64,000 nt of DNA, from positions 15,378,607 through 15,442,606 of the forward strand of contig NC_068984.1 in NCBI RefSeq assembly GCF_001194135.2, read 5' to 3'. The translations under genes and the position numbers were made by a program. Origin of the DNA: Octopus bimaculoides (Eukaryota). Positions 32,596 to 62,100 of the stretch are shown piece after piece (position 1 is the stretch's first letter; each line of letters starts with the position of its first letter). The notes beneath the pieces were generated by a model. It worked only from the letters and a program-made list of their open reading frames with translations. It was not told where the DNA came from and did not search any database.

Positions 32596-32772
32596 TTATC
32601 TACTTAAACTATGTGACCTAGCACGTCCACCCAAAAAGCAGGACTTTTTAAAAAATGGATCCTTCAAAGCTTCTTTTAGTGTTATTCGCGCCAGGGGATC
32701 ATATCGTAGCATCTTCCAAATCAAATCAAACAGAAGCACGTGGTCCTCATTGTTGGGCTCCATTATGTACCG
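32596..32772 (-). CDS. CLK2: CLK distal terminal exon Y2 (58 aa): [41 protein letters not shown]...RARSHSLSR*
   Basis: ttttaatccag|CGG acceptor, phase 0; second copy of subdomain XI; TAA stop. Confidence 0.92.
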   Translation of the reverse strand, partial: RYIMEPNNEDHVLLFDLIWKMLRYDPLARITLKEALKDPFFKKSCFLGGRARSHSLSR

Positions 32773-38700: not shown

Positions 38701-41156
38701 ACCATCAGATCAATATGAGGGGGTTAAAGGCGTCACAGTTTGTTGACAGTTATCTATTTACAAACTGTTATTATGTCTATGACACTCAACTCCAGCCAGT
38801 CCAAGCCACTGAGCTGTATGTAGACACCATGAAGAGATACATCTCACTGCTGTAAGCAGTAAGAAGTCTGTACCCTCAAATACTCTGCCAATAGTTCCAA
38901 ACTCAAACCTCAGGCAATCTCCTGGGGCCAATAGTTCTAATCATTTATTGATACACGAATTTGATTAAAAGTTAAGATATCCAATGTAAAACTGAAGTAA
39001 ATATTATTATTATTATTATTATTATCTGTATTCTGAATTGTTACAGTAATAAAAGAAAGACAATAAATATAGTAGCAACACAAACAACTTGAAATGACAA
39101 CCTACACCCCACCCCTCCAACAGATTATTTTTCACTGTTAGTAGAGATAATTAGAGGTAATAGTGATACTAGTGGAAGAGATAGCTGCTGTCATTACCAT
39201 GAAATGTGAAGTGAAGTGAATACAAGTGGTGGGTTGGGTGAAAATGGGAGAATAACATGCTCAAGTTTAAAGTCCCATGCAACTATTAATGTTGGAGATG
39301 ATCACCTGGCAAGTAGCTGTAGCTGACATCAGATTTGCCTGGACCCTCACTCTTTGTTTTCACACAGTCACGGTCACCATGGTTTTCAGATGATAACTCA
39401 CTGCCCTGGTAACTTTTGCGCCGGTCCAGCATCCTTGGTTCCTTCGGCACGGATGGCTTGTGCTCTAGATGTGGTTGCTCTTTTAATAAGGGTTTGAAGA
39501 AAGGGTGAGCAAGTGTTTCCGCAAGAGTTATCCTGTAATGAGGCTCATACTCAAGCATCTTTTCAATGAGATCAAAGAGCTGAAGATGTTGGATCCCTTT
39601 GTCTCTTAAATAGTGCTGTAAGGAAGAAAGAGGGAGGCACACGTCACATAGAGGGGATTGGTAAAAGGTTATTGTATCTAAACTTGGTGATGTTGCCCAT
39701 TCTGCAAAGCTGTAATAGGTCAGTTTACATCAATCATTAAAAACATCCAAGCTATTTTAAATTAGTGTGACACTACCAAAATGATGAAAGCAGGCTGTTA
39801 ATAAAATTTCCCTGAAATAGCAATTGGTGTAAATAGCTTTGACAGTATTCTTTAAACACTGAGATGATATGTTCAAATTTATACATCTTAAAAGATTTCT
39901 ATTTTATTTAGAAATAAATATAAAATGGTTTTCTACAAAAATCAAGACTGACAAGAACTAAGGTATAAAAAAAAAAAATTTTACAAAAAAAAATAATAAT
40001 AATAATAATACTAATTTTACAAAGAAAAAAATAAAAGTTGAGCAGAAGTTAGCTAACTCTAAAAAACATATCACAATAAAAAATATTCTGTGAAAATCTG
40101 CTCTTTCTAATAATAGTTTTCTCAAATATTACCTTTAACTGTAATAAGAATAAATTTCTAATAAACATGTAAATTTTTAATATTCTAGATGAAAAAGAAC
40201 ATTATTTCCACCCATCCAATTTATTTATTCTTTATCTAATAGAGAAATAGCTAACATAACTAAAACTTTTGGTAGCATGTTTGCTTTCCTTGGCCGTAGC
40301 AACAGTTATCCAGGTATGATATTTTTAGAACCACTTAGAAAAGCTGCAAGATGTAATAATATCTACACACATGGTTTTGGAATTACTGATTCCTAGAGCT
40401 AGCTACTAAATACACTTGGTTACATTTGTTTTCAAGGTGTACTAAACTAATATGGAAGGAGGGAAGGTGTAAATAAGCAAATAGTATTATTTCAGTCATC
40501 AATATTTTACTATTCATGCGCACAATCACATTAGTACCTGAATATTAGTAACTTGGAATATCATTTCATCTCAACTAATACCACAACAATCAGTTTTCTT
40601 TTTTCACTTTTTATATACCTTCATCACATTGGTACAAATATGAAAACTTCAAAGGACGGACATAGCAAATGAAATATTAGTCTAGGCAAGGTTTTGTTTT
40701 CCAAGCAACATATCCACATAGTTTACAATATTTTCCCATGAAAAATGAAGGGGACATTAAAGATAGACACTGCTAATAAGCATACAAAAAGGACACACAT
40801 GCTCACTTCAAAAATGGGTTTAAATGGTTTTATGGTATGTATGTCAGTATATATAAATTGACTAGTAATAATGGCTCTACATCTTTGCTTCTTGCATTAA
40901 CTACCATAATGAAACAGAAGTGTATCTACAGAATAAGTTCATCATTCTTTTTTTTTATTATTATGAACAATGCATCTCAAATGTTACTCTGATATAATCC
41001 TTGACAGAAACACAAATGATACTTTCTCCCAAGAAAGACTCAAATGAAATTTCTACAAGAAAGGTTTAAAAAAAACAACAACAAAATAATCATGAACAGG
41101 ATGGATGGATGGATNNNNNNNNNNNNNNNNNNNNNNNNNNNNNNNNNNNNNNNNNN

Positions 41157-41189
<33 letters not shown>

Positions 41190-44100
41190 TTATGTGTTTC
41201 AGCCAAGTGGCTGCGGTCATGCTGGTGCACCACCGTGGGTGCACTATATATATATAGTTAAATATAATATAGACACAAAAGAATATGATACTAGTAAAGG
41301 AATGTTTCTCTAACTGAAAATATGAAAACATATATGGAGGAGGGGGAGTTCAAACATGACCTGATCCTAAGGAGGTGGATAAGTTCTTCTGGTATAAAGA
41401 TTTTGATATTGCTAAAACATATTACATCTATATATGTGATGTAATAAGCAAACCTGGGGACAACAAAGATTCAACAGTGAGATAAAAATAAAAGAGAACA
41501 ATGCATGTGGATAGACTGGGGAATGTAAATTGAGAAGTTTAGCATGAAAGAAGAGAAGGGAATTTACCCTTTGCAGAAAGAACGCCAACAATTTTTGCAT
41601 TCAAATTTTTGAAATAAACATTTTTTCTAGAGAAAACTTTAGACATCTTAACTCTAGGATCAGTTAACAGAAAGACATTATTCAAATGGCGTTAGGAAGG
41701 GCATCCAGCTGTAGAAACTCTGCCAAATCAGACTGGAGCCTGGTGTTGCCATCCGGTTTCACCAGTCCTCAGTCAAATCGTCCAACCCATGCTAGCATGG
41801 AAAGCGGACGTTAAACGATGATGATGATGATGATGATGATATTGAGCAGGGTGAACAACAAATTTGAGAATGAAAGGAATTACTTATCAAAAACATGCTA
41901 ATTTGGTTGCATACTGCAAACAGAAAATTAAACTTCAGAATTTTCAGATTCAATTAAATAAAATCATGTTCTCTTAAATTTTTCAACTGAATCAGTAAAG
42001 GCTATGATAAAAAGGGCAGTGACAGAACGATATGGATGGTCACCAGAAAGAATGGAGATGTTCAAAGATTAACATAGTCTTGGTGACCTGAAATATACAG
42101 GCTACCATTACAATAATAAATTAAGCCATATTATTTAAATAAGAATCGACATCACAAATATACGTATGACTAGTTTAATAATGCTAAATGGCAATGTATG
42201 GCTCAATATAACAGGTAAATTGACATAAAACCTACAAGTACAGAAATATTGACTACAGTATTACAATCATAATTGCAATCTATATTAGTATCAAAATAAT
42301 CTTCACACTAATTTGAAATGAAAATATTTAACTATCATAAGTATAGCTGTTTCTAATAACTTTATAAGGATTCTAATGTTATATCCTTCTAAATATCGAC
42401 ACCCAAGAAAAATGGACATTTAGATAAAGAAGTACAAAATGAATACAAATGGACAAGAGAGCCTGTATGTTTGGCGAGTTAAACAAGAGCTTTCAGGTAC
42501 GTAAATTCTAACTATTTAGAAGAAGGGAAGAAAAAGAAAAAAAACAGACTAGAGAGAAGGTACCCCATGAAAAATAGTGTTTGATTCATCTTTTGCTTAT
42601 TACATCATTTGTTCCATCAGTCATATAGGATTTATAAGTTGCACAAAACACATAATCTTTACATTTTAAGTATTCTAATCAAAGGAAAAATTTCTTTTAA
42701 TCATGAAATATTCTAAATTGTCTTCCTGTGGGGCAATTAATATTTTAAAAAAAAGACAAATGGATGCAAAGAAAAAGTTTTATGAATCTGTAAATGGGCT
42801 CTGTATAATGAATTTTAAATGGAATGTCAAAAATATAAGTGACGAGACGAGTCATGCTATTTGACAGTAAAAACATTTATCCTCACATAAAAGACGATTT
42901 TTGTTAAATAAATGATTTACTGTTATTGTTTGCCATACACAAGTTCAGAAGTTGTCAATGTTGCAAAAAATATAAGGTATTCTGTTTAATTATATATTAA
43001 CTCGAAACAAAGTTTAAGCCGCTAGCTTGTGAAAAGTAAAAGCAGTAGCCATGCGAAAATGGCAAATTATTAATCATTTGAAAATAAAAATAGCTTCTAA
43101 ATATGCAAAACAATGGAACAAAATTCATTTAAAAAGACAATTGGGTGATTACATACAATGAAGTTATTTAAAAACACGTTATAACATAAAACAGTAAAAA
43201 TACATGTATATAAAAGAGACAAAAAAAAAAACAAGAGAAAGGTTTAAAAAATAAAATCACACAAAAATTTTTAATTTGATTTCTGTGCAAGAAGAAAATA
43301 ATGTAAAAAAAATTTTTCATTTAGCCCCCATGCTTTTTGAAATAAACAGAAACATGCCAAAGAAAAAATTTATTGTGGGAAAATGTGTAATAAAAGTCAA
43401 TTTTGTTTTTTGTTTTTTTTTTAAATTTTAGANNNNNNNNNNTGTTTAAAATCTTGAATTTTCTGGGAGCAGGAGATGTTAGACAAAAAAAAACTAGTTT
43501 TTCAGAAACGAGTCCAACATTCGGAGGGGCCTGAATCTATTGGTTTTTAACTTGTTGGATCTGGAGGAAGGAACAAGGCACACAAATTCCTAGAATAGTG
43601 GAATTGATGCCAACACCTGTGAGAAACATAATCAAGCTGCAAGTTCCAGAGGGTTAACTTTAAGGGGACAGAAAGGACAGAGCACAGCAAGGATGATGGG
43701 AAAAGGAGAGGTGAGTGAGATGGGAGTGCCTGAGTGAGGCAGAGAGGCGACAGTACACATGTGGGCCAGAGGCTAGAGTGAATAACTTTATGCCAATCAA
43801 TCAGGTGGCTCTTTCCTGAATGTAGTCTGGGAAGGATGTTTATAATGTTAAGACAATTTGAAATACAGGAGTAAGCCTTACCTCCAAAATAAACAATACA
43901 AGAGAAATTGTTGGGGGAAAGCAGATTTGTTATACTAGTAATTAATGGGTTAATGAGGTGTGGGGGATATTAGGATGGAATTAAAAGTTCTAAGTTGAAA
44001 TAAGCCTCCTTTGTAAGCAATGAAAACCTTGTCACAGTCAATTAAGATCAACCAAAAACATGAAGTTGAAACAGAAGGGTTTAAGTTCCAGATACTAACT

Positions 44101-47100
44101 CAAGGTGAATATAGTGAAAATTAGAGCATAAGTAACGAGTAGAATGTTACAAACGTTAATTAGAAAAACATTCAGATTCATTATTAAAAACTGAAAGGGG
44201 CTCAATATTATGTATGCAAATATATTCAATGGATATAGATTAGCTTGATTAATGCTACAAACAATTTTAAAATCTACCTCTTGCATTAGTACAACCAACA
44301 GTCCAATTGGTTAAGGACCAAAGATTGTCTGAATAGGCCTTGAGAAATACTAGTATGTCTTAGGGGCAGAGTAAATAATAGCTCAATGTCTGTTGCAGTA
44401 AGCGGATAGTAGTTTTATTGATAACAAAACCTGTTAGATACTGGAGTAATTTCAAATCAACAAAGACAACTTTTTCTTACAATATAAAAAGGGAGGAACA
44501 ACCTATAATTCATTGGATATGAACACAAACTAGAACCAAAATGAAAGTGGATTGAGGAAGTAACTACATCCAAGAGGATTAGTTGTTGCAATAAAGACAA
44601 GGATATGATGTGTATAGATTATGCATGCTAAGAAAAGAAAAATAAAACAGGGCAAAAAAAAAAATCGAGAAGTATGCTAATATGCATATCCTCCCAGCCC
44701 ACAGAAGTATGGAAAAATGCATATTAAGTTGCTGTTATTGCTGCTGGCAGAGCTAAAAGACATGAGATAATTAAAAAGTAGAATTACTAGTCTAATTGTA
44801 TTGATACAAGTGTTACATATGTTATTAACATTAGAGCTAAAAACAATAGAAGTATTGATTGTGCAACAAGCTCTAGTGTTTTGCTCATTATATGCACTTG
44901 CACAAACACATTCTGCGGCTGTACATGTACATATATATATATATATATATANNNNNNNNNNNNNNNNNNNNNNNNNNNNNNNNNNNNNNNNNNNNNNNNN
45001 NNNNNNNNNNNNNNNNNNNNNNNNNNNNNNNNNNNNNNNNNNNNNNNNNNNNNNNNNNNNNNNNNNNNNNNNNNNNNNNNNNNNNNNNNNNNNNNNNNNN
45101 NNNNNNNNNNNNNNNNNNNNNNNNNNNNNNNNNNNNNNNNNNNNNNNNNNNNNNNNNNNNNNNNNNNNNNNNNNNNNNNNNNNNNNNNNNNNNNNNNNNN
45201 NNNNNNNNNNNNNNNNNNNNNNNNNNNNNNNNNNNNNNNNNNNNNNNNNNNNNNNNNNNNNNNNNNNNNNNNNNNNNNNNNNNNNNNNNNNNNNNNNNNN
45301 NNNNNNNNNNNNNNNNNNNNNNNNNNNNNNNNNNNNNNNNNNNNNNNNNNNNNNNNNNNNNNNNNNNNNNNNNNGTATTCTGTTTACATATTAAGTTGTT
45401 GCCTTCATTCCTAACATAAACACAAATCCTAGTGAGGTTTATAAATGACCCATGTTACTTGACTGATACCATTTTATCAGTCCCAGAAGACTCGGCAGGC
45501 TTTGTAAAGAATCATAACAATATACCACAAGGCATTTGTCTTAAACTCATCTAATTTCTGCCAATCCACTATCTGGAACAATCGAATGTTAAAAGGAGAT
45601 TTGTAAATTACAAATCCACTATGTTTACAAAAATTGTAAAATATTAACTTTGATTCCCCTCCTCCTCCTCCTCCCATAGGTTAAACACATTTTGAAAAGG
45701 AATCAGCTAAATAACTTGTTACTCACCTTAAGTGGTTTGCAATTTTCCCGAATATACCGCCCAGATGAGTTTTTTTCATCCCAGTCCAGTTTCCCATGGT
45801 AGAAATACTTGCTTTTTCTTTGGAGATAAATATGGGGAGTGTGGGGTTAGGGATTAGAAAAACAAACAAACAAACAAAGCCGTATGAGCTAATGAGAATA
45901 GCCATGCAGCATGCTACCCAAGTCAAACTACATTCAGTTCAATGGAAACAACTAATAAAAGGTAAGTTATATTAGTATTGAAACAAATTATGAATGCTGG
46001 CAGCAAAAAGAAAAGTGGTAAACTAATCAACTAAAGAGACAAAAATTTATGGGGTGGGAACTTGGGTTGTTACCAAGAGCTTGTACTAAATATGCTGGGA
46101 GATTAATAAATAACAAATTAGAAGTTTGGTCAGAAGAATAAAAATACAAACAGAACTTGCAGGCAGATTCAAGGATCCACAAAACACATGCATTGCCCCA
46201 CTGGCAACTACTACCAAATTTAAATGGCTAACTGAAGAAACAATTGAAAGGAAATTTGAACAAGCAAGTAAACAACATTAGTCCCCAGTGAAAAGATTTT
46301 AAGTGCTGAGCTTAAATAAAAAAATTGTGAATTAAGATTATTGAAAGAGTACATGGAAAACTATCTAGTCAGGAATGGATTAAAATAGAGTTAAACCAAA
46401 ATATAACTATTCTAGAAATATCAGTGTCACCTCCCAAAGAAGGCTTACAAGATAAGATTTTTACTTCTTCAGATATAACCTTAGAAAATTTTGGAAAAGA
46501 TCACCTTGAGAAAATAATTTGTATATTTTAGGACATTTTTTTTATTAAGTTGACACATAAATAAATGAAACTTGGCAATTTTGTTTATCCCCCAAAAAAC
46601 GAAGCTTGTTTTCAACGAAGAGATTTTACATTAGAAAGAGTTTAAGTTTAGAAATGTATTTATTACCTACAAGACAACACACCAAAAGTGTTGTGAACAA
46701 ATTAGTTGTTACCTGCTGGCACATTGCCCAAACATCATACACTTCAGTGGTTTCTTACAGTTGGAAAATAGTAAGTCATGCACTATAGTGCACTTATGGT
46801 AGTAGTTACAGAGAAGGCTGAGCATGTACTTACATAAAGTGGTTTACAGTTCTCCCTTACATATCTCCCAGCAGAAGTAGTCGAGTCCCAATCAAGGCGA
46901 CCATGCCAGAAGTAATTTGTTCTTAAAACAATAGGAACAAAATGACAAGTGAATTTTATTATAATTAAAGTTTACTTCAGGGTTATTATAATTTGAAAAT
47001 AAATCATCATTTATGAATTTTCTTTAAACTTGTGTTTCAAAATCAACAATGTCTTTGACTCATGTAATATTTACTCAATGTAAATTGCACAAGATGCCAC

Positions 47101-47745: not shown

Positions 47746-50700
47746 TTTAACAATAATTTACAATATTAATATTCTAAAGTTGGACTGATTCCAAGAGTTC
47801 ACTGAACTACTTTTAGAAATAAATACCTATGTATTTCTGCTGCACATCAAACATAAATATCAATTACAGGAAAATTTCTTTATGAAATTTGGACTAATTA
47901 AATTAGGGAGAAAGATAATAATAAAAAGAAACACCAATATGAAATGTCATGATACACTTTTGAAAATATAATTGCTTAACAATTAAAGTAATATATGTTG
48001 TAATAAATGTTAATGATTCATTATGCAACACCCCACCCCACCCAATATTACTGTCAAATTTAAAGTTAGAAAAAATATATTTATAAAATAATCACAGTTT
48101 ATCAATTAAAATATTATTTCACCTATTTAAGTTAGATTTTTGTTCTATAACCATCCTTTCTAATGTCCAATATTATTAACTTTAAGTCAATAAGCTTACC
48201 GAGATCTTTTTGCCATCCGATATGGTATACTGCCCAGTATCCGTTCCATCATTGCCAAATGCTCCTTATTGTCATGTGTCTAACCCAAAACAAAAAAGTA
48301 AATGTCAAAGCAGCCAATACAAGGTTAATTGTGTGTTCACACTAAATATATTTAAGACAAAATACAAAGATTAACAAGTATAATATATATTTTAAAAAAA
48401 TAACATTTTGCTAAGAAGTAGAATTAAAAAACAAAAATACATGTCAGCATGTCTATGTATAATTTCAAGAAAATATACAAAACTAAATCAATAATGTTGC
48501 CTATTCTATTGACTATAGAACAACAGTAATAGTCATAATGGTTTGCAAGAATTACAGTAAAATCAAATTCAGGATAAAATTCATATAGAGGCTGAAAAGA
48601 ATACTCGCAAAATAGCAAATAGCAAGTAAGTGTAACTTTGACAGGCAAAAAGTTTAATTAATAAACATCATACTATTATATAATTTAATAAACATTAAAA
48701 AAATAAGCATTAAAGCAATTTACCTGAAATAATGTGTATCCTGTGTATAGCTCAAACATGATACAACCTATACTCCACACATCACAGGGTTGAGACCAAC
48801 CTAATTCTAAAATTACAAAGAGAAAAATATCAGTTATGCAGAAAATTATTGCAGAGACACAGAGATATCATCTTTTTTTAATGTCTGCCTTCCATGTTGG
48901 CATACATATAAATACAAAGAAGTATTGATAGATAAATACAAATCATTGCAAGAAAAAAAATTCTTAATGTAAGGGCTGATTAAATCTAGCTTTACTTCTT
49001 ATTTAAGATCAAGGTCAGTCTTTGTATGAGACAAAGTCAGCAAAGAAAATTTCATTGAAAGGTTTCAACCAAGATTTATGGAATTTAAAACTAACATCAT
49101 TTAATGTTCGTATTCCATGCTGGCATGGGTTGGGTGGTTTGACAGAACTTGCTCCAGTGACTGCTTTGGCATGGTTTCTACAGCTACTATGACGTCCTAG
49201 CTCATCAGGCTACATTTGTTCTCAAAACCTCAAGTATACATATAGTTGATGTTCACTTCCAGTTATTGTAGCAACTTAACCCAGGTGAAGAATCTAAGTT
49301 GGTACACAGATCTCTCTCTCTCTTCAGCCAGGTAACCTTGTACTTCTTCAACAGCAAGAAACCTGTTTCTGTGTCTGTCTCACTATAGCCTTTCATCATC
49401 CGACACAAGATCACTTCCTCTTGAAAGTGTTTTTTTTTTTTTTTTTTTTTTTTTGTCTTGCAAGTACTTGGTGACCCTATCAGTGCAGGTGCTACTTAAA
49501 AGCACCCAGTCCACACTGTAAAGTGGTTGGTGTTTGGAAGGGCATCCAGCTGTAAAAACCTTGCCAAAACTGACCTTAACTGTACTTGTGCCACGTAAAA
49601 AGCACTAAGTCCACTCTGCTGAGTGGATGGTGTTAGGAAGGACAACCAGCTGTAAAATTCCTGCCAAAACAGTCACAGAAGTCCGGTGCAGGCTTCTGCC
49701 TGGCCGGCTCTTGTGAAATCATCCCACCCATGCTAGCATGGAACACGAACATTAAACAACGATGATGATGATGATGATGATGAATCACCAAAGCTGCAAT
49801 ACTTAAAACCAGGTAAATCTATCTGTTGAGAGCTAAGTGTATTGATCTCAGAAACAAGACTTACAGTTGCACTGAACTCGTCAGCAAGTTGTCCCATTTA
49901 TGCTCACAAAAAAAGGTAAATGATTCATAACAACTTTAATGCTCAAGTATCATTAGAATCATTACATCAGCATCTGGTGAATCCAGAATGTGGGCTCCAG
50001 CAGGGCAACATTTTCAATAGGGAACCAACCACATTCCAAAGTGAATGTGTATTGCTTTTACCAAACTAACTAAGTTTTATTCCAAAAGTTTCAAATCTAA
50101 ACCCATTCAAATTAAAGTAATTTCACTACTTCAACTGTAATATGGAACTTCTACTGGAGAAACCACAACACTCCAGAAAGTACAATTAAAATAACAAGCA
50201 ATAAAGACTAACACTTCATATAAGTGGGTGGTGGTGATAAAACATTTTTATATTTTCAAAATGTCCAAGACCCATTTTCCAAACTTTCACCATTTAATTC
50301 TTTTTAAGTTCTAAGTTTCTGAATGGATGGATAGAGTATCAATGATGAATCAGTCATGTACTGGCAATTGAATTGTGTCTGAAGTTGAGTTCATTTATCA
50401 AGCTCATCATTTTCGATCGATACTTCTCCAGCTGTTACAAATTAATTCCTTTTGTATCGTCTGAGAAACTATCTATAAAACTGCAATAAATGTAAACAAG
50501 GCTAGCAATTCCCAAGTAAAAGAAAACCATAATACACTTACCCAAAATAACTTCAGGAGCTCTATAATGCCTCGTTGATACAATAGTGCTGTGGTGTTCA
50601 TGATCAAATGTTGCAGATCCAAAGTCTATTAATCTTATATCTGTATTTTTTACTCTCCGCATATCTCGCCTCTAGAAAATGTAAAATACGAAACAAAGAT

Positions 50701-59114: not shown

Positions 59115-62100
59115 CATACATATATATATACATACATACATATATGTGTGTGTGTGTGTGTGTAGTAAGAATCATTCTTTGGCAGATGAAACTTTTTCAA
59201 TTTCCAATGAAATAATTACATTTCGAGAATAACAACACATATGCCCATGCCAGCATAGTTAAATAGTTTATTGTGCAAATGTGATTCTGGGTTTGACCTC
59301 CACTACACAGCAGTTTTGGCAAGTGACTTGTATGCAAATTCAACTTATAACAGAAAGACATCTATGAAATTTGGCAGAATGAAAACGGGCACAATCCTGC
59401 AGCATGTGTATATGCACATGTTGTCTACTTGTCCTGTAATTTAGCGATTTAAGAAAAAACCTCTGAAGGTGATATTCCAGCATGAGTAAAACAAGTTAAA
59501 GAATATACACATTAGATAAGCAAAATCTTGGCCTGTTTGAAGAACTGTTTTTTATTAAAGATTATAATTTCTCTCTCTCATGTGTACAAGCAAGTGGAAA
59601 TGCATTTTTAGAAACTACCAAGGCTTCCTTTTGTAAGCATACAATAGTTTTGCAAAACTGGGAATTGACAAAAGAGATCCTATGCTGCAAACATACACTC
59701 GCACAACCTTTAATTTTTTCAATAAAAATCAATAGAAAATAGCAAAATGTACGGGAGTTATTAAAACTGAAGCACAAAATCGTTTAAAGATATGTTTGAA
59801 AACCTACAAAGTGCAAAGCAACAACCCTAGCAAACAATAGCAGGAAGAAGGGGAAATTTTAATGAGTTTAGGCTTAGCTTAAATTAAAAAAAGGAAGTAA
59901 AACGCCCTTTGATGCTCATCTAATTTCTGTAACAATAAGCAAATGAGAAAGAAATATCAGCTGTGCTGAATAGTGAGTATAAGACCTGGTATCTTTTATC
60001 TCAATAAACTAAGTAGAATTAAGTGTTTTGGTTTGAGAAACAACACATCACATGACTCAAGATCTAATAGACAGATAACAGTGTTCCATCTACTGAGTAA
60101 AGATAGTAGCTCATTAAATTAAATAAAAATAGGCTTGGCTATACAGCCATGAACTATACAAGTAATGACTGCTTGTCTACTGTTTCTTACAGATATTGGC
60201 TGCAAAGTAGAATTGTAGAAACTATCAAGCAAGAACAGTTCAAATGGTGCAGTATTTGTATCTAAAGCTATTATAAAGAGCATAAAATTGAGAGTAAACA
60301 AATGACCAACAAGCTGAATTATTATCCACCGGTATCTGGTCACACATGTTTTTATGTCAAAGACAATTAACTCTCAATGGTCCAAACTAATAATCTGCAA
60401 ATAGCTACCAAAAATGAAGTATACATAATTCACTGAAGGAAACAAGAGGCACTTCAATTGACAGTCGTATCGTGATTAACAAGCAGCACTATTTTCAAAT
60501 TTCTTTCATAAGCAAACTATGGGAGATCCAAGAGAAATATCCTTTAATTTGACATCTTGAAAACTTAAATCAGCTGCAGCAATAGTGGTAGTTAAGAAAA
60601 TGTATATCAATATATGCTCTGCTGCAACAAACTTCAAACTGTGTCAGCAATGTATATTGCAAATAAACAGGTTCACTTTCACAGTCATGAATTAAGAAAG
60701 TGAATTTGTAAATGGTATCTATACAAACAAAGCTACACATACACAAGAAACAAAATACTTGTGTAGATATTATCAAAGAAGCAATTACCAAAATAAATTC
60801 CTAAATTATCCTTAAGGTTATACCTCTTATATACACACATGATAAAAAAAATTTGTGAGCTAAAATGGAAAATAGTCGATGAAAAAATTCAGAAGTTCAG
60901 CAATTGCAAATCTATTTTTATGAACATTATATCAACTACATTGCTACATGACTATTGAACTGTGTCAACTTTTACAATAACAATAGCTCTTCATTTACAT
61001 AACAGAGCATTTCCAATTTCTTCCTTCTTGCTCTGAGCCAGCTAAGAATACTTGTAACATTTAACTATACATCAATAACAACCATAATGAAATACTAACA
61101 CCATAGGGTGGAAAATTTAACAAAATGACATTATAGTTGGTGCTGTTTAGTATCAAATCAGCCTTGGTCAAGTAGAGTTACAGTCAAAGGCATTCAAGCC
61201 ATCATCATTCAGCCTTTAACATCAAGGACAGCATCATTCAATATTATCCTGGTTTCACATCTTGGCATTTTGCTTTAAGGCAATTTGGTCATTTCTTCTA
61301 GACAGTCAAGTAGCTACATAAAGACTCTCCAATTATCAGATGAGCTAGATAATTCAATTGTAACTGAACATTTATTATTCTATTTTCTCGCGTTTCCTGA
61401 CACTCCTCAAGCTTGATTAATTCAATGCAATGTGAATAAACAAGCATTACAGTTGACAATAAATGCTAAAGGGTTTTTAAAAAAGGATAAATAGTGGAAG
61501 CTAGTCTGCTAATATCCAATCAGCATTGTTCATGCTCAATGATCCTGCAGTTATCTGATAGTTTACAAATACTTTCACTCAGAAAAACATAATTCACCAA
61601 TACAATTAAGGAAGGACTCTTTAGTCTAGCTTCAGCAACACAATGAAAAACAAGATACATTTTTCTGCACCGTTTATAGATTGTTGCAACATATCAGAAT
61701 GAGGGAGATTCTTATGGAACTGAATGAAAATGCTTTTATGACACAAAATAGAGAAGATATCTTCATTTAATATATCCAACTTTTTTTTTCCCCCAGCTAA
61801 AAAAGCATTTCTACAGCCAAAAATAAAATAAAATAGAGCGAATTTTAGCCAAAGACCATAACAAGAAATGGTCTTATTTTCATGTGAGAAATATAAATGA
61901 AGTGCAGGAAAGAAAAAGTTGTGCAAAGAATAATGGGCGTTTAAGCATAAACTTTTCATAAATAGCAAATAATAAACAAGAAGACCATGCTAACATTTAA
62001 AATCGAACTTTGTTGCTGCAAAAAGAGAAAGATATTAGATATGAAGACAATTCCCTTAGTCTAAAGAACCTACCTCGCAACATCCTTCACCTCAACACAT

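Follow-up and report, generated by a model that had tools for sequence, protein, structure and literature searches.

The 64,000-nucleotide (nt) stretch of the Octopus bimaculoides contig NC_068984.1 analysed here (RefSeq assembly GCF_001194135.2, positions 15,378,607 to 15,442,606; hereafter the window, whose own numbering is used throughout) has 33% G+C and contains 14 runs of N, as expected of a draft assembly. Its minus strand carries the kinase part of one CLK/LAMMER kinase gene, which we detected with a tblastn probe and by direct reading. Two similar exons of this gene, X1 and X2, encode alternative versions of the same segment of the kinase C-lobe, and they are followed by two further homologous exons, A and B, which encode the end of the protein. 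We consider it likely that X1 and X2 are ancient, tandemly duplicated alternative exons of one CLK gene, with one of them taken up per mRNA, the choice enforced by the reading frame and combined with the downstream A/B switch.

Comparison of the C-terminal kinase part with solved structures gave CLK2 as the best match (E 4.5e-60), followed by CLK4, CLK3 and CLK1 (E 1e-54 to 1e-60 for the group), and the database proteins nearest to the gene are the Octopus CLK2 isoforms; diagnostic residues agree with the O. bimaculoides entries and differ from those of O. vulgaris and O. sinensis. The CLK/LAMMER hallmarks are present, i.e., the LAMMER motif, the HTDLKPEN catalytic loop and LDWD with the conserved Trp of the MAPK-like insertion. 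By these features, as described for the family (PMC2667211), the gene product is identified as a CLK/LAMMER dual-specificity kinase.

All exons and elements described below are on the minus strand. The constitutive upstream exon (48200-48279, ttag/ACACAT...CTCG/gtaagc, corresponding to positions 974-1053 of the RNA contig L001 introduced below) encodes the LAMMER motif, ends in the split codon CG and is the donor to X1 or X2. Exon X1 (46834-46921, ttttaag/A...TAT/gtaagt) has 88 nt and encodes the split R and 29 residues; exon X2 (45727-45817, ccaaag/A...AAG/gtgagt) has 91 nt and encodes the split R and 30 residues. Both lengths are 3n+1, both exons complete the split codon (CG/A) and both exit in phase 0. 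The spacer between them (46833-45818, 1016 nt) contains no coding exon, and all flanking sites are GT-AG with the U2-type donors GTAAGT and GTGAGT. A preliminary description of this DNA had proposed two homologous exons of the same phase (2 to 0) with canonical splice sites, and this is borne out in every detail, coordinates included. Cassette exon A (39306-39615) has 310 nt (3n+1) and encodes alternative last kinase helices with a tail of its own. The coding part of the terminal exon B (32596-32772) reads RYIMEP...RARSHSLSR-stop if A is skipped and AVHNGAQQ-stop after A; the 3′ untranslated region reaches at least 32193.

X1 and X2 are identical in 19 of 29 residues and 55 of 87 nt, with a saturated synonymous divergence (pS 0.94) and a nonsynonymous divergence (pN) of 0.22. 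Each of them matched human CLK1 at about residues 403-437 (tblastn, E about 1e-8). The numbering of the CLK1 probe agrees with Trp419 as published (PMC2667211). Because both exon types recur as a pair in five further genomes, the homology of X1 and X2 is far beyond chance, and their sequences identify them as tandem exon duplicates of one gene. We additionally noted that X1 holds an internal donor-like GTAAGG (46860-46855, ..AGATAT/GTAAGGGAG..), which is kept in Argonauta; its use was not seen in the transcript contigs.

According to the annotation, X1 and X2 are used ALTERNATIVELY: each of the 20 kinase-bearing octopod isoforms, which are database products from O. bimaculoides, O. sinensis, O. 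vulgaris and Argonauta hians, has exactly one of the two exons (9 with X1, 11 with X2, none with both and none with neither). RefSeq has listed X1 and X2 isoforms from the first O. bimaculoides annotation onwards, and X2 isoforms were modelled independently in O. bimaculoides and O. sinensis. Direct transcript evidence was provided by L001, an assembled RNA contig of 2059 nt from a close relative (exons 94-100% identical), which aligned to 48279-48200, 46921-46834, 39615-39306 and 32772-32193, i.e., X1 is spliced in, X2 is skipped and the end of A (39306) is joined to B (32772). In L003 and L004, two cephalopod-like metatranscriptome contigs (83% identical), an X1-type segment likewise follows directly on the upstream exon. 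A single exon of the pair is present in 20 of 20 annotated isoforms and in three transcript contigs, all three with X1, and the alternative use of the pair claimed at the outset is supported, with L001 and L003 splicing the upstream exon to X1 past X2. One further candidate, P0430, had been considered as a transcript fragment with an X2 junction and was rejected as a genomic open reading frame of exon A only.

The preliminary description left out the second alternative module. Exons A and B are homologous, each encoding a version of the last kinase helices. The X exon joins B in frame if A is skipped, and inclusion of A puts B out of frame, so that isoforms differ in which of two frames of B they translate. 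The annotation contains all four combinations (X1+A, X2+A, X1+B and X2+B). Several database matches end like the in-frame exon B (...RARSHSLSR-stop), a C-terminus which we take to be common to Doa and other invertebrate CLKs. Having two copies of two consecutive coding segments within 15 kb could also suggest two partly duplicated neighbouring genes, an explanation that we regard as extremely improbable. The order is X1-X2-A-B and not X-A-X-B, the window has one set of upstream kinase exons, L001 joins a single upstream exon to X1, A and B, and all four combinations have the same N-terminal parts.

Several side observations concern this second module. In the cephalopod-like contig L003 (1441-2112), and likewise in L004, three homologous C-terminal segments follow one another, first A', which has a stop of its own, then A and B; no relic of A' was found in Octopus or Argonauta. 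Upstream of exon A, the intron holds a 370-nt block (40145-40510) with 79% identity between Octopus and Argonauta and no open reading frame, which may regulate the inclusion of exon A. In four proteins, P0243, P0251, P0236 and P0239 (from Ostrea, Pomacea, Plakobranchus and Gigantopelta, respectively), the X1+A form runs into a very long C-terminal extension (946-1288 amino acids), and their RefSeq names, 'cyclin-dependent kinase-like 5' or 'titin-like', look like misnomers for CLK isoforms.

The sizes of X1 and X2 suggest how the choice could be kept exclusive. Joining X1 to X2 shifts the frame, as had been claimed, and places a stop inside X2, 359 nt before the last junction when A is present. 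Skipping both exons gives RTI-stop, with the stop 2-3 codons into the next exon and 300 nt before the last junction when A is present. Under the criterion for nonsense-mediated decay (NMD) that an early stop precedes the last exon junction by over 50 nt, the double-inclusion and double-skip products that contain A are expected to be NMD substrates. The 3n+1 sizes are kept across phyla, which fits such a frame lock, and the exclusivity is most simply explained as being enforced at least by the reading frame. Two other routes to exclusivity were considered and rejected. Simple steric exclusion, already ruled out in the preliminary description given the 1016-nt spacer, is excluded, as the introns of the other species are also long (577-4161 nt), and it would require no more than about 60 nt between donor and branch point. 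Incompatibility of U2 and U12 sites is excluded by the uniformly GT-AG, U2-type sites.

The position of the stops raises the question of dosage. Vertebrate CLK genes regulate their own splicing, and the aberrant patterns that stop 300-359 nt upstream of the last junction in the presence of exon A could serve the same end, so that the pair would also, or mainly, lower CLK output by regulated unproductive splicing through double inclusion or double skipping. We consider this unlikely, since no double-inclusion product is present among the 20 isoforms or the contigs, and since the residues specific to the X1 and X2 types (see below) are kept across phyla, suggesting selection on two distinct proteins. 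The alternative use of two functional exons with an enforced frame is preferred.

By alignment, the X exon corresponds to about residues 408-437 of CLK1. In the CLK1 structure, residues 409-418 form the two-strand beta-sheet of the MAPK-like insertion, Trp419 is strictly conserved and packs against the LAMMER helix, and residues 424-432 form the CLK-specific helix alphaH (PMC2667211). The placement of the segment in the MAPK-like insertion between alphaG and alphaH, as first described, is thus correct for the beta-sheet half of the insertion and too narrow in that the exon also encodes Trp419 and alphaH itself. The accompanying idea that the insertion shapes a docking surface is not what the structural work describes: the insertion buries the LAMMER helix, and alphaH lies over the groove where SRPK1 docks its substrates, i.e., the SRPK-type docking groove is blocked, and no docking surface is reported (PMC2667211). 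The proposed retuning of substrate docking by the exon switch is not supported by the present data.

The core residues YF.HG.LDWD and GRY.RENCKPL are the same in X1 and X2. The two types differ in an N-terminal basic cluster, K-x-K in X2 vs T-N in X1, where X1 is one residue shorter, in Y vs W, in the loop between Trp and alphaH, E-K-N-S in X2 vs S/P-T-T-S in X1, and in the last residue, K/R in X2 vs Y in X1. The net charge, counted from the sequences, is about +4 for X2 and about +1 for X1. We infer that the differing residues are located on the protein surface, and it is plausible that the swap alters surface properties; the X1 and X2 kinases may differ in function.

The pair was detected well beyond the octopods. 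The Argonauta genome keeps the order upstream exon-X1-X2-A-B, the sizes of 88 and 91 nt and the splice sites; both copies are retained there with open frames, so that neither the loss nor the frameshift of a copy, which the preliminary description had named as a refutation in related octopods, was found in this one. The exon order and canonical splice sites are the same in three further species. In the bivalve Mactra, X1 has 88 nt and X2 has 94 nt, with A and B. The gastropod Elysia has X1 of 88 nt, one residue off the Octopus X1, and X2 of 91 nt, with A and B, and the brachiopod Lingula has X1 of 88 nt and X2 of 91 nt with B; exon A was not detectable in Lingula. A search with the 30-residue X1 peptide against 1.84 billion representative proteins detected X1-type segments in Plakobranchus, Gigantopelta, Pomacea, Ostrea and Tegillarca. 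X1-type isoforms are also present in Ruditapes and Mactra, the Ruditapes isoforms being of X1-type with B-type and of X2-type with A-type, and the nemertean Lineus has an X1-like form. Oyster and unionid products are of the X2-type. All arthropod and vertebrate CLKs retrieved are X2-type. At one barnacle locus, a lone X2-type exon was present, with no X1-like sequence; outgroups were sampled thinly, by this one genome and protein lists.

On the simplest reading of these sequences, the exon was duplicated in an early lophotrochozoan, before the mollusc-brachiopod split at the latest, with X2 as the ancestral sequence type and X1 as the derived and now more constrained copy. The octopod-only framing of the preliminary description was too narrow for a pair that appears to predate this split.

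Other sequences related to the pair were noted. Contig L008 (10064-10752; ENA ERZ25333528, 31% G+C) carries a compact CLK gene with a single X1-type exon directly before a B-type exon and no tandem pair, and several related short open reading frames are present in metagenomes. L012 and L018 (JGI Ga0099805) are spliced transcripts in which an X1-type segment leads to a B-type end (..RSHSLSR), with an upstream exon nearly identical to that of the octopus. In the Elysia contig L006, exon B occurs twice (43340-43471 and 45635-45766), with identical protein and 2.3 kb apart, which reflects either an assembly duplication or a very recent duplication.

Both exons are open, right-sized and spliceable across several phyla, which implies long-term purifying selection on both. 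Such selection had been proposed from the divergence of synonymous positions around a kept protein core, and the pS and pN between the two exons together with their state across phyla support it. X1 is under extreme constraint in molluscs, with pN 0.03 and saturated pS between Octopus and Elysia, and X2 is less constrained, with pN 0.21. Between Octopus and Argonauta, pS is 0.65 in the upstream constitutive exon, 0.055 in X1, 0.06 in X2 and 0.18 in A. The introns of the two octopods are unalignable except for conserved islands, 244 nt around X1 (89% identity) and 585 nt around X2 (75%), the latter block (45675-46255) covering X2 and about 440 nt of the upstream intron. The roughly tenfold suppression of synonymous change, together with the conserved intron islands, indicates RNA-level constraint on X1 and X2. 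Constraint of this type is usual for regulated alternative exons.

A candidate long-range RNA helix was also detected. The X1-intron-X2 regions of Octopus and Argonauta, folded independently, both paired the segment 46831-46745, which starts at intron positions +3 to +7 past the X1 donor, with 46264-46177 in the conserved block, about 400 nt upstream of X2. The helices common to both folds are ACAUGC/GCAUGU, UAACUACUACC/GGUAGUAGUU and ACUG.AAGAAAC/GUUUCUUCAGU. When all 90-nt windows from the upstream exon to exon A were scanned as partners of the donor arm, the homologous block was the top partner in both species, with rank 1 of 503 intronic windows in Octopus (z -4.4) and 1 of 353 in Argonauta (z -3.9). 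This empirical scan replaced RNAduplex on long arms with mononucleotide shuffles, which was too permissive. Alignment of the arms of the two species gave 39 long-range pairs, with three one-sided changes, one compensatory change and no broken pair. Another pairing, of X1 46881-46863 with 46103-46085, was seen in Octopus only and was dropped because of two mismatches in Argonauta. The helix is treated here as a candidate selector at the octopod level and not as a conserved docking/selector system. The search for docking/selector pairings suggested in the preliminary description has in this way yielded one octopod duplex by the X1 donor, and neither a second selector nor an equivalent with a consistent position in Mactra, Elysia or Lingula.

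The exclusivity could be set mainly by competing docking/selector RNA structures, with the reading frame as a back-up. The interrupted duplex of about 40 bp by the X1 donor, conserved in the octopods, would fit such a mechanism, as would the strong suppression of synonymous change in both exons and the conserved intron islands. The arthropod docking-site/selector clusters (Dscam exon 6, 14-3-3 xi) similarly have conserved complementary intronic elements by the alternative exons, hundreds of nt apart. In those clusters there is a selector per variant, whereas a single selector-like arm was found here, in two octopods only, and no positionally conserved equivalent was found in the bivalve, the gastropod or the brachiopod. 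In addition, two species cannot separate inherited sequence conservation from structural constraint. We regard a leading role of RNA structure as possible, though doubtful, and the frame-enforced choice between two functional exons is retained as the preferred explanation.

A number of observations weigh against this preferred explanation. Policing of the frame by NMD would be incomplete, because the stops of the A-skipped products fall only 49 nt before the last junction (X1+X2+B) or in the last exon (both skipped, with B). The support for the helix comes from two related species and concerns one selector and not one per exon; when the donor arm was scanned for partners in Mactra, Elysia and Lingula, the partner position was not consistent, the best partners being in different introns, with z values near the expectation for the best of several hundred windows. 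A short-query protein search for the junctions of the upstream exon, X2 and A, together with a scan of metagenome contigs, found no cephalopod X2 transcript contig, and the evidence for X2 use in cephalopods consists of predicted or deposited RefSeq and GenBank isoform models. The only Argonauta product seen uses X1. Compared with Octopus, Argonauta X2 has four nonsynonymous changes and one synonymous change, including D>K in the otherwise invariant LDWD; X2 may be relaxing in Argonauta, the counts being too small for a distinction between relaxation and adaptation.

The missing X2 transcript contig and the 4:1 ratio with D>K in Argonauta would both be explained if one copy, most likely X2 in cephalopods, were a decaying or unused relic and the X2 isoforms were annotation artefacts. 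This is very unlikely in our opinion. X2 has an open frame, 91 nt and both splice sites in Octopus, Argonauta, Elysia and Lingula, it lies inside the 585-nt conserved block, and its pS is ten times below that of the constitutive neighbour. Moreover, X2 isoforms were modelled separately in O. bimaculoides and O. sinensis, and X2-type segments are present in oyster and unionid products.

Taken together, the exon anatomy, the isoform and transcript data and the comparative analysis suggest the following mechanism for two functional alternative exons. Each mRNA would take either X1 or X2, which would supply the same structural element, i.e., the beta-sheet half of the insertion, the invariant Trp and alphaH. 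Uptake of both exons or of neither leads to an early stop, and most such products would be NMD targets. The choice between X1 and X2 is probably regulated; the candidate helix, once formed, would hinder the access of U1 to the X1 donor and potentially favour X2, although it could also have other roles. The choice between A and B swaps the last kinase helices and the C-terminal tail, giving four C-lobe variants. The pair itself would go back to the duplication in an early lophotrochozoan, with X2 keeping the ancestral type and X1 being derived.

The remainder of the kinase part in the window was assigned by tblastn and direct reading to the upstream exons 62140-62074, 52230-52140, 51940-51864, 50920-50829, 50671-50542, 48806-48724 and 48279-48200. 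The N-lobe exon (NGQIAALK...), whose segment is expected between 62074 and 52230, and the N-terminal exons had no tblastn match in the window. The absence of the N-lobe exon is probably due to an assembly gap; for the N-lobe and N-terminal exons together, it is probably either a gap or a location beyond the window. The O. bimaculoides model XP_014781440.2 (P0223) is without the same N-lobe segment as the window. We also noted an alternative arginine/serine-rich insert in the kinase N-lobe, near 62074, which distinguishes the octopus isoforms P0217, P0228 and P0230 from P0097 and P0098; the insert form reads VKDVA[[14 protein letters not shown]]NGQIAALK, and P0102 has a similar insert.

The alternative exons of MAPK8 and MAPK14 are located in or near the MAPK-insert region. 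Tandem duplication is a known source of homologous mutually exclusive exons, a class that is typically ancient and whose human catalogue includes MAPK8 (JNK1), MAPK14 (p38 alpha) and PRKCB and has no CLK event (PMC8373072). The MAPK8 and MAPK14 events resemble X1/X2 in that adjacent homologous exons of near-equal length swap a C-lobe segment, are ancient and are used one per transcript (PMC8373072). In contrast to them, the pair described here is in the CLK/LAMMER family, was seen in molluscs, a brachiopod and a nemertean only, and has no counterpart in the arthropod and vertebrate sequences that we examined. The betaI/betaII forms of PRKCB are similar to exons A and B, as homologous alternative exons encode a C-terminal part that completes or wraps the kinase domain (PMC8373072). 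The difference is that exon A, the upstream copy, is a cassette of 3n+1 length whose inclusion changes the reading frame of the terminal exon B, so that B is used in two frames, and that a cephalopod-like transcript stacks three C-terminal copies (A', A and B).

Human CLK1-4 and Drosophila Doa share with the octopus gene the LAMMER motif, the MAPK-like insertion with the invariant Trp and alphaH, and, in its B form, the ...RSHSLSR-type C-terminus. They have a single X2-type exon at this position. The known alternative splicing of CLK and Doa genes occurs elsewhere, i.e., CLK1 exon 4 skipping, intron retention, and alternative promoters in Doa. CLKs are treated as temperature-sensitive splicing regulators, and the MAPK-like insertion is one of three recurrent sites of divergence between them; the same phylogenetic analysis gives a single CLK gene for molluscs, with no mention of alternative exons in the insertion (PMC12795684). 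A full-text literature search found no paper describing the X1/X2 event. No earlier description seems to exist of how old the pair is, of the two-module layout or of the RNA-level constraint, while the type of mechanism is known and the isoforms are already in public annotation.

A more far-reaching hypothesis would treat X1/X2 and A/B as a four-state switch of the CLK C-lobe that has existed in lophotrochozoans since the Cambrian. The choice would be made through the long-range RNA structure and the activity of CLK on SR (serine/arginine-rich) proteins, forming a self-regulating and possibly temperature-responsive splicing circuit of ectotherms, in which the X1 and X2 kinases would differ in partner binding or thermal behaviour. 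In this full form the hypothesis is speculative and rather improbable.

CLK kinases control alternative splicing throughout eukaryotes. According to the proposed explanation, one gene of this family would hold two versions of the insertion in a large animal clade, kept for about half a billion years, in addition to a switch of the C-terminal helices. This would provide a natural pair, or quartet, of kinase variants for probing the role of the CLK-specific surface, and would add a very old lophotrochozoan example to the few tandem-duplicated exon switches known within kinase domains.

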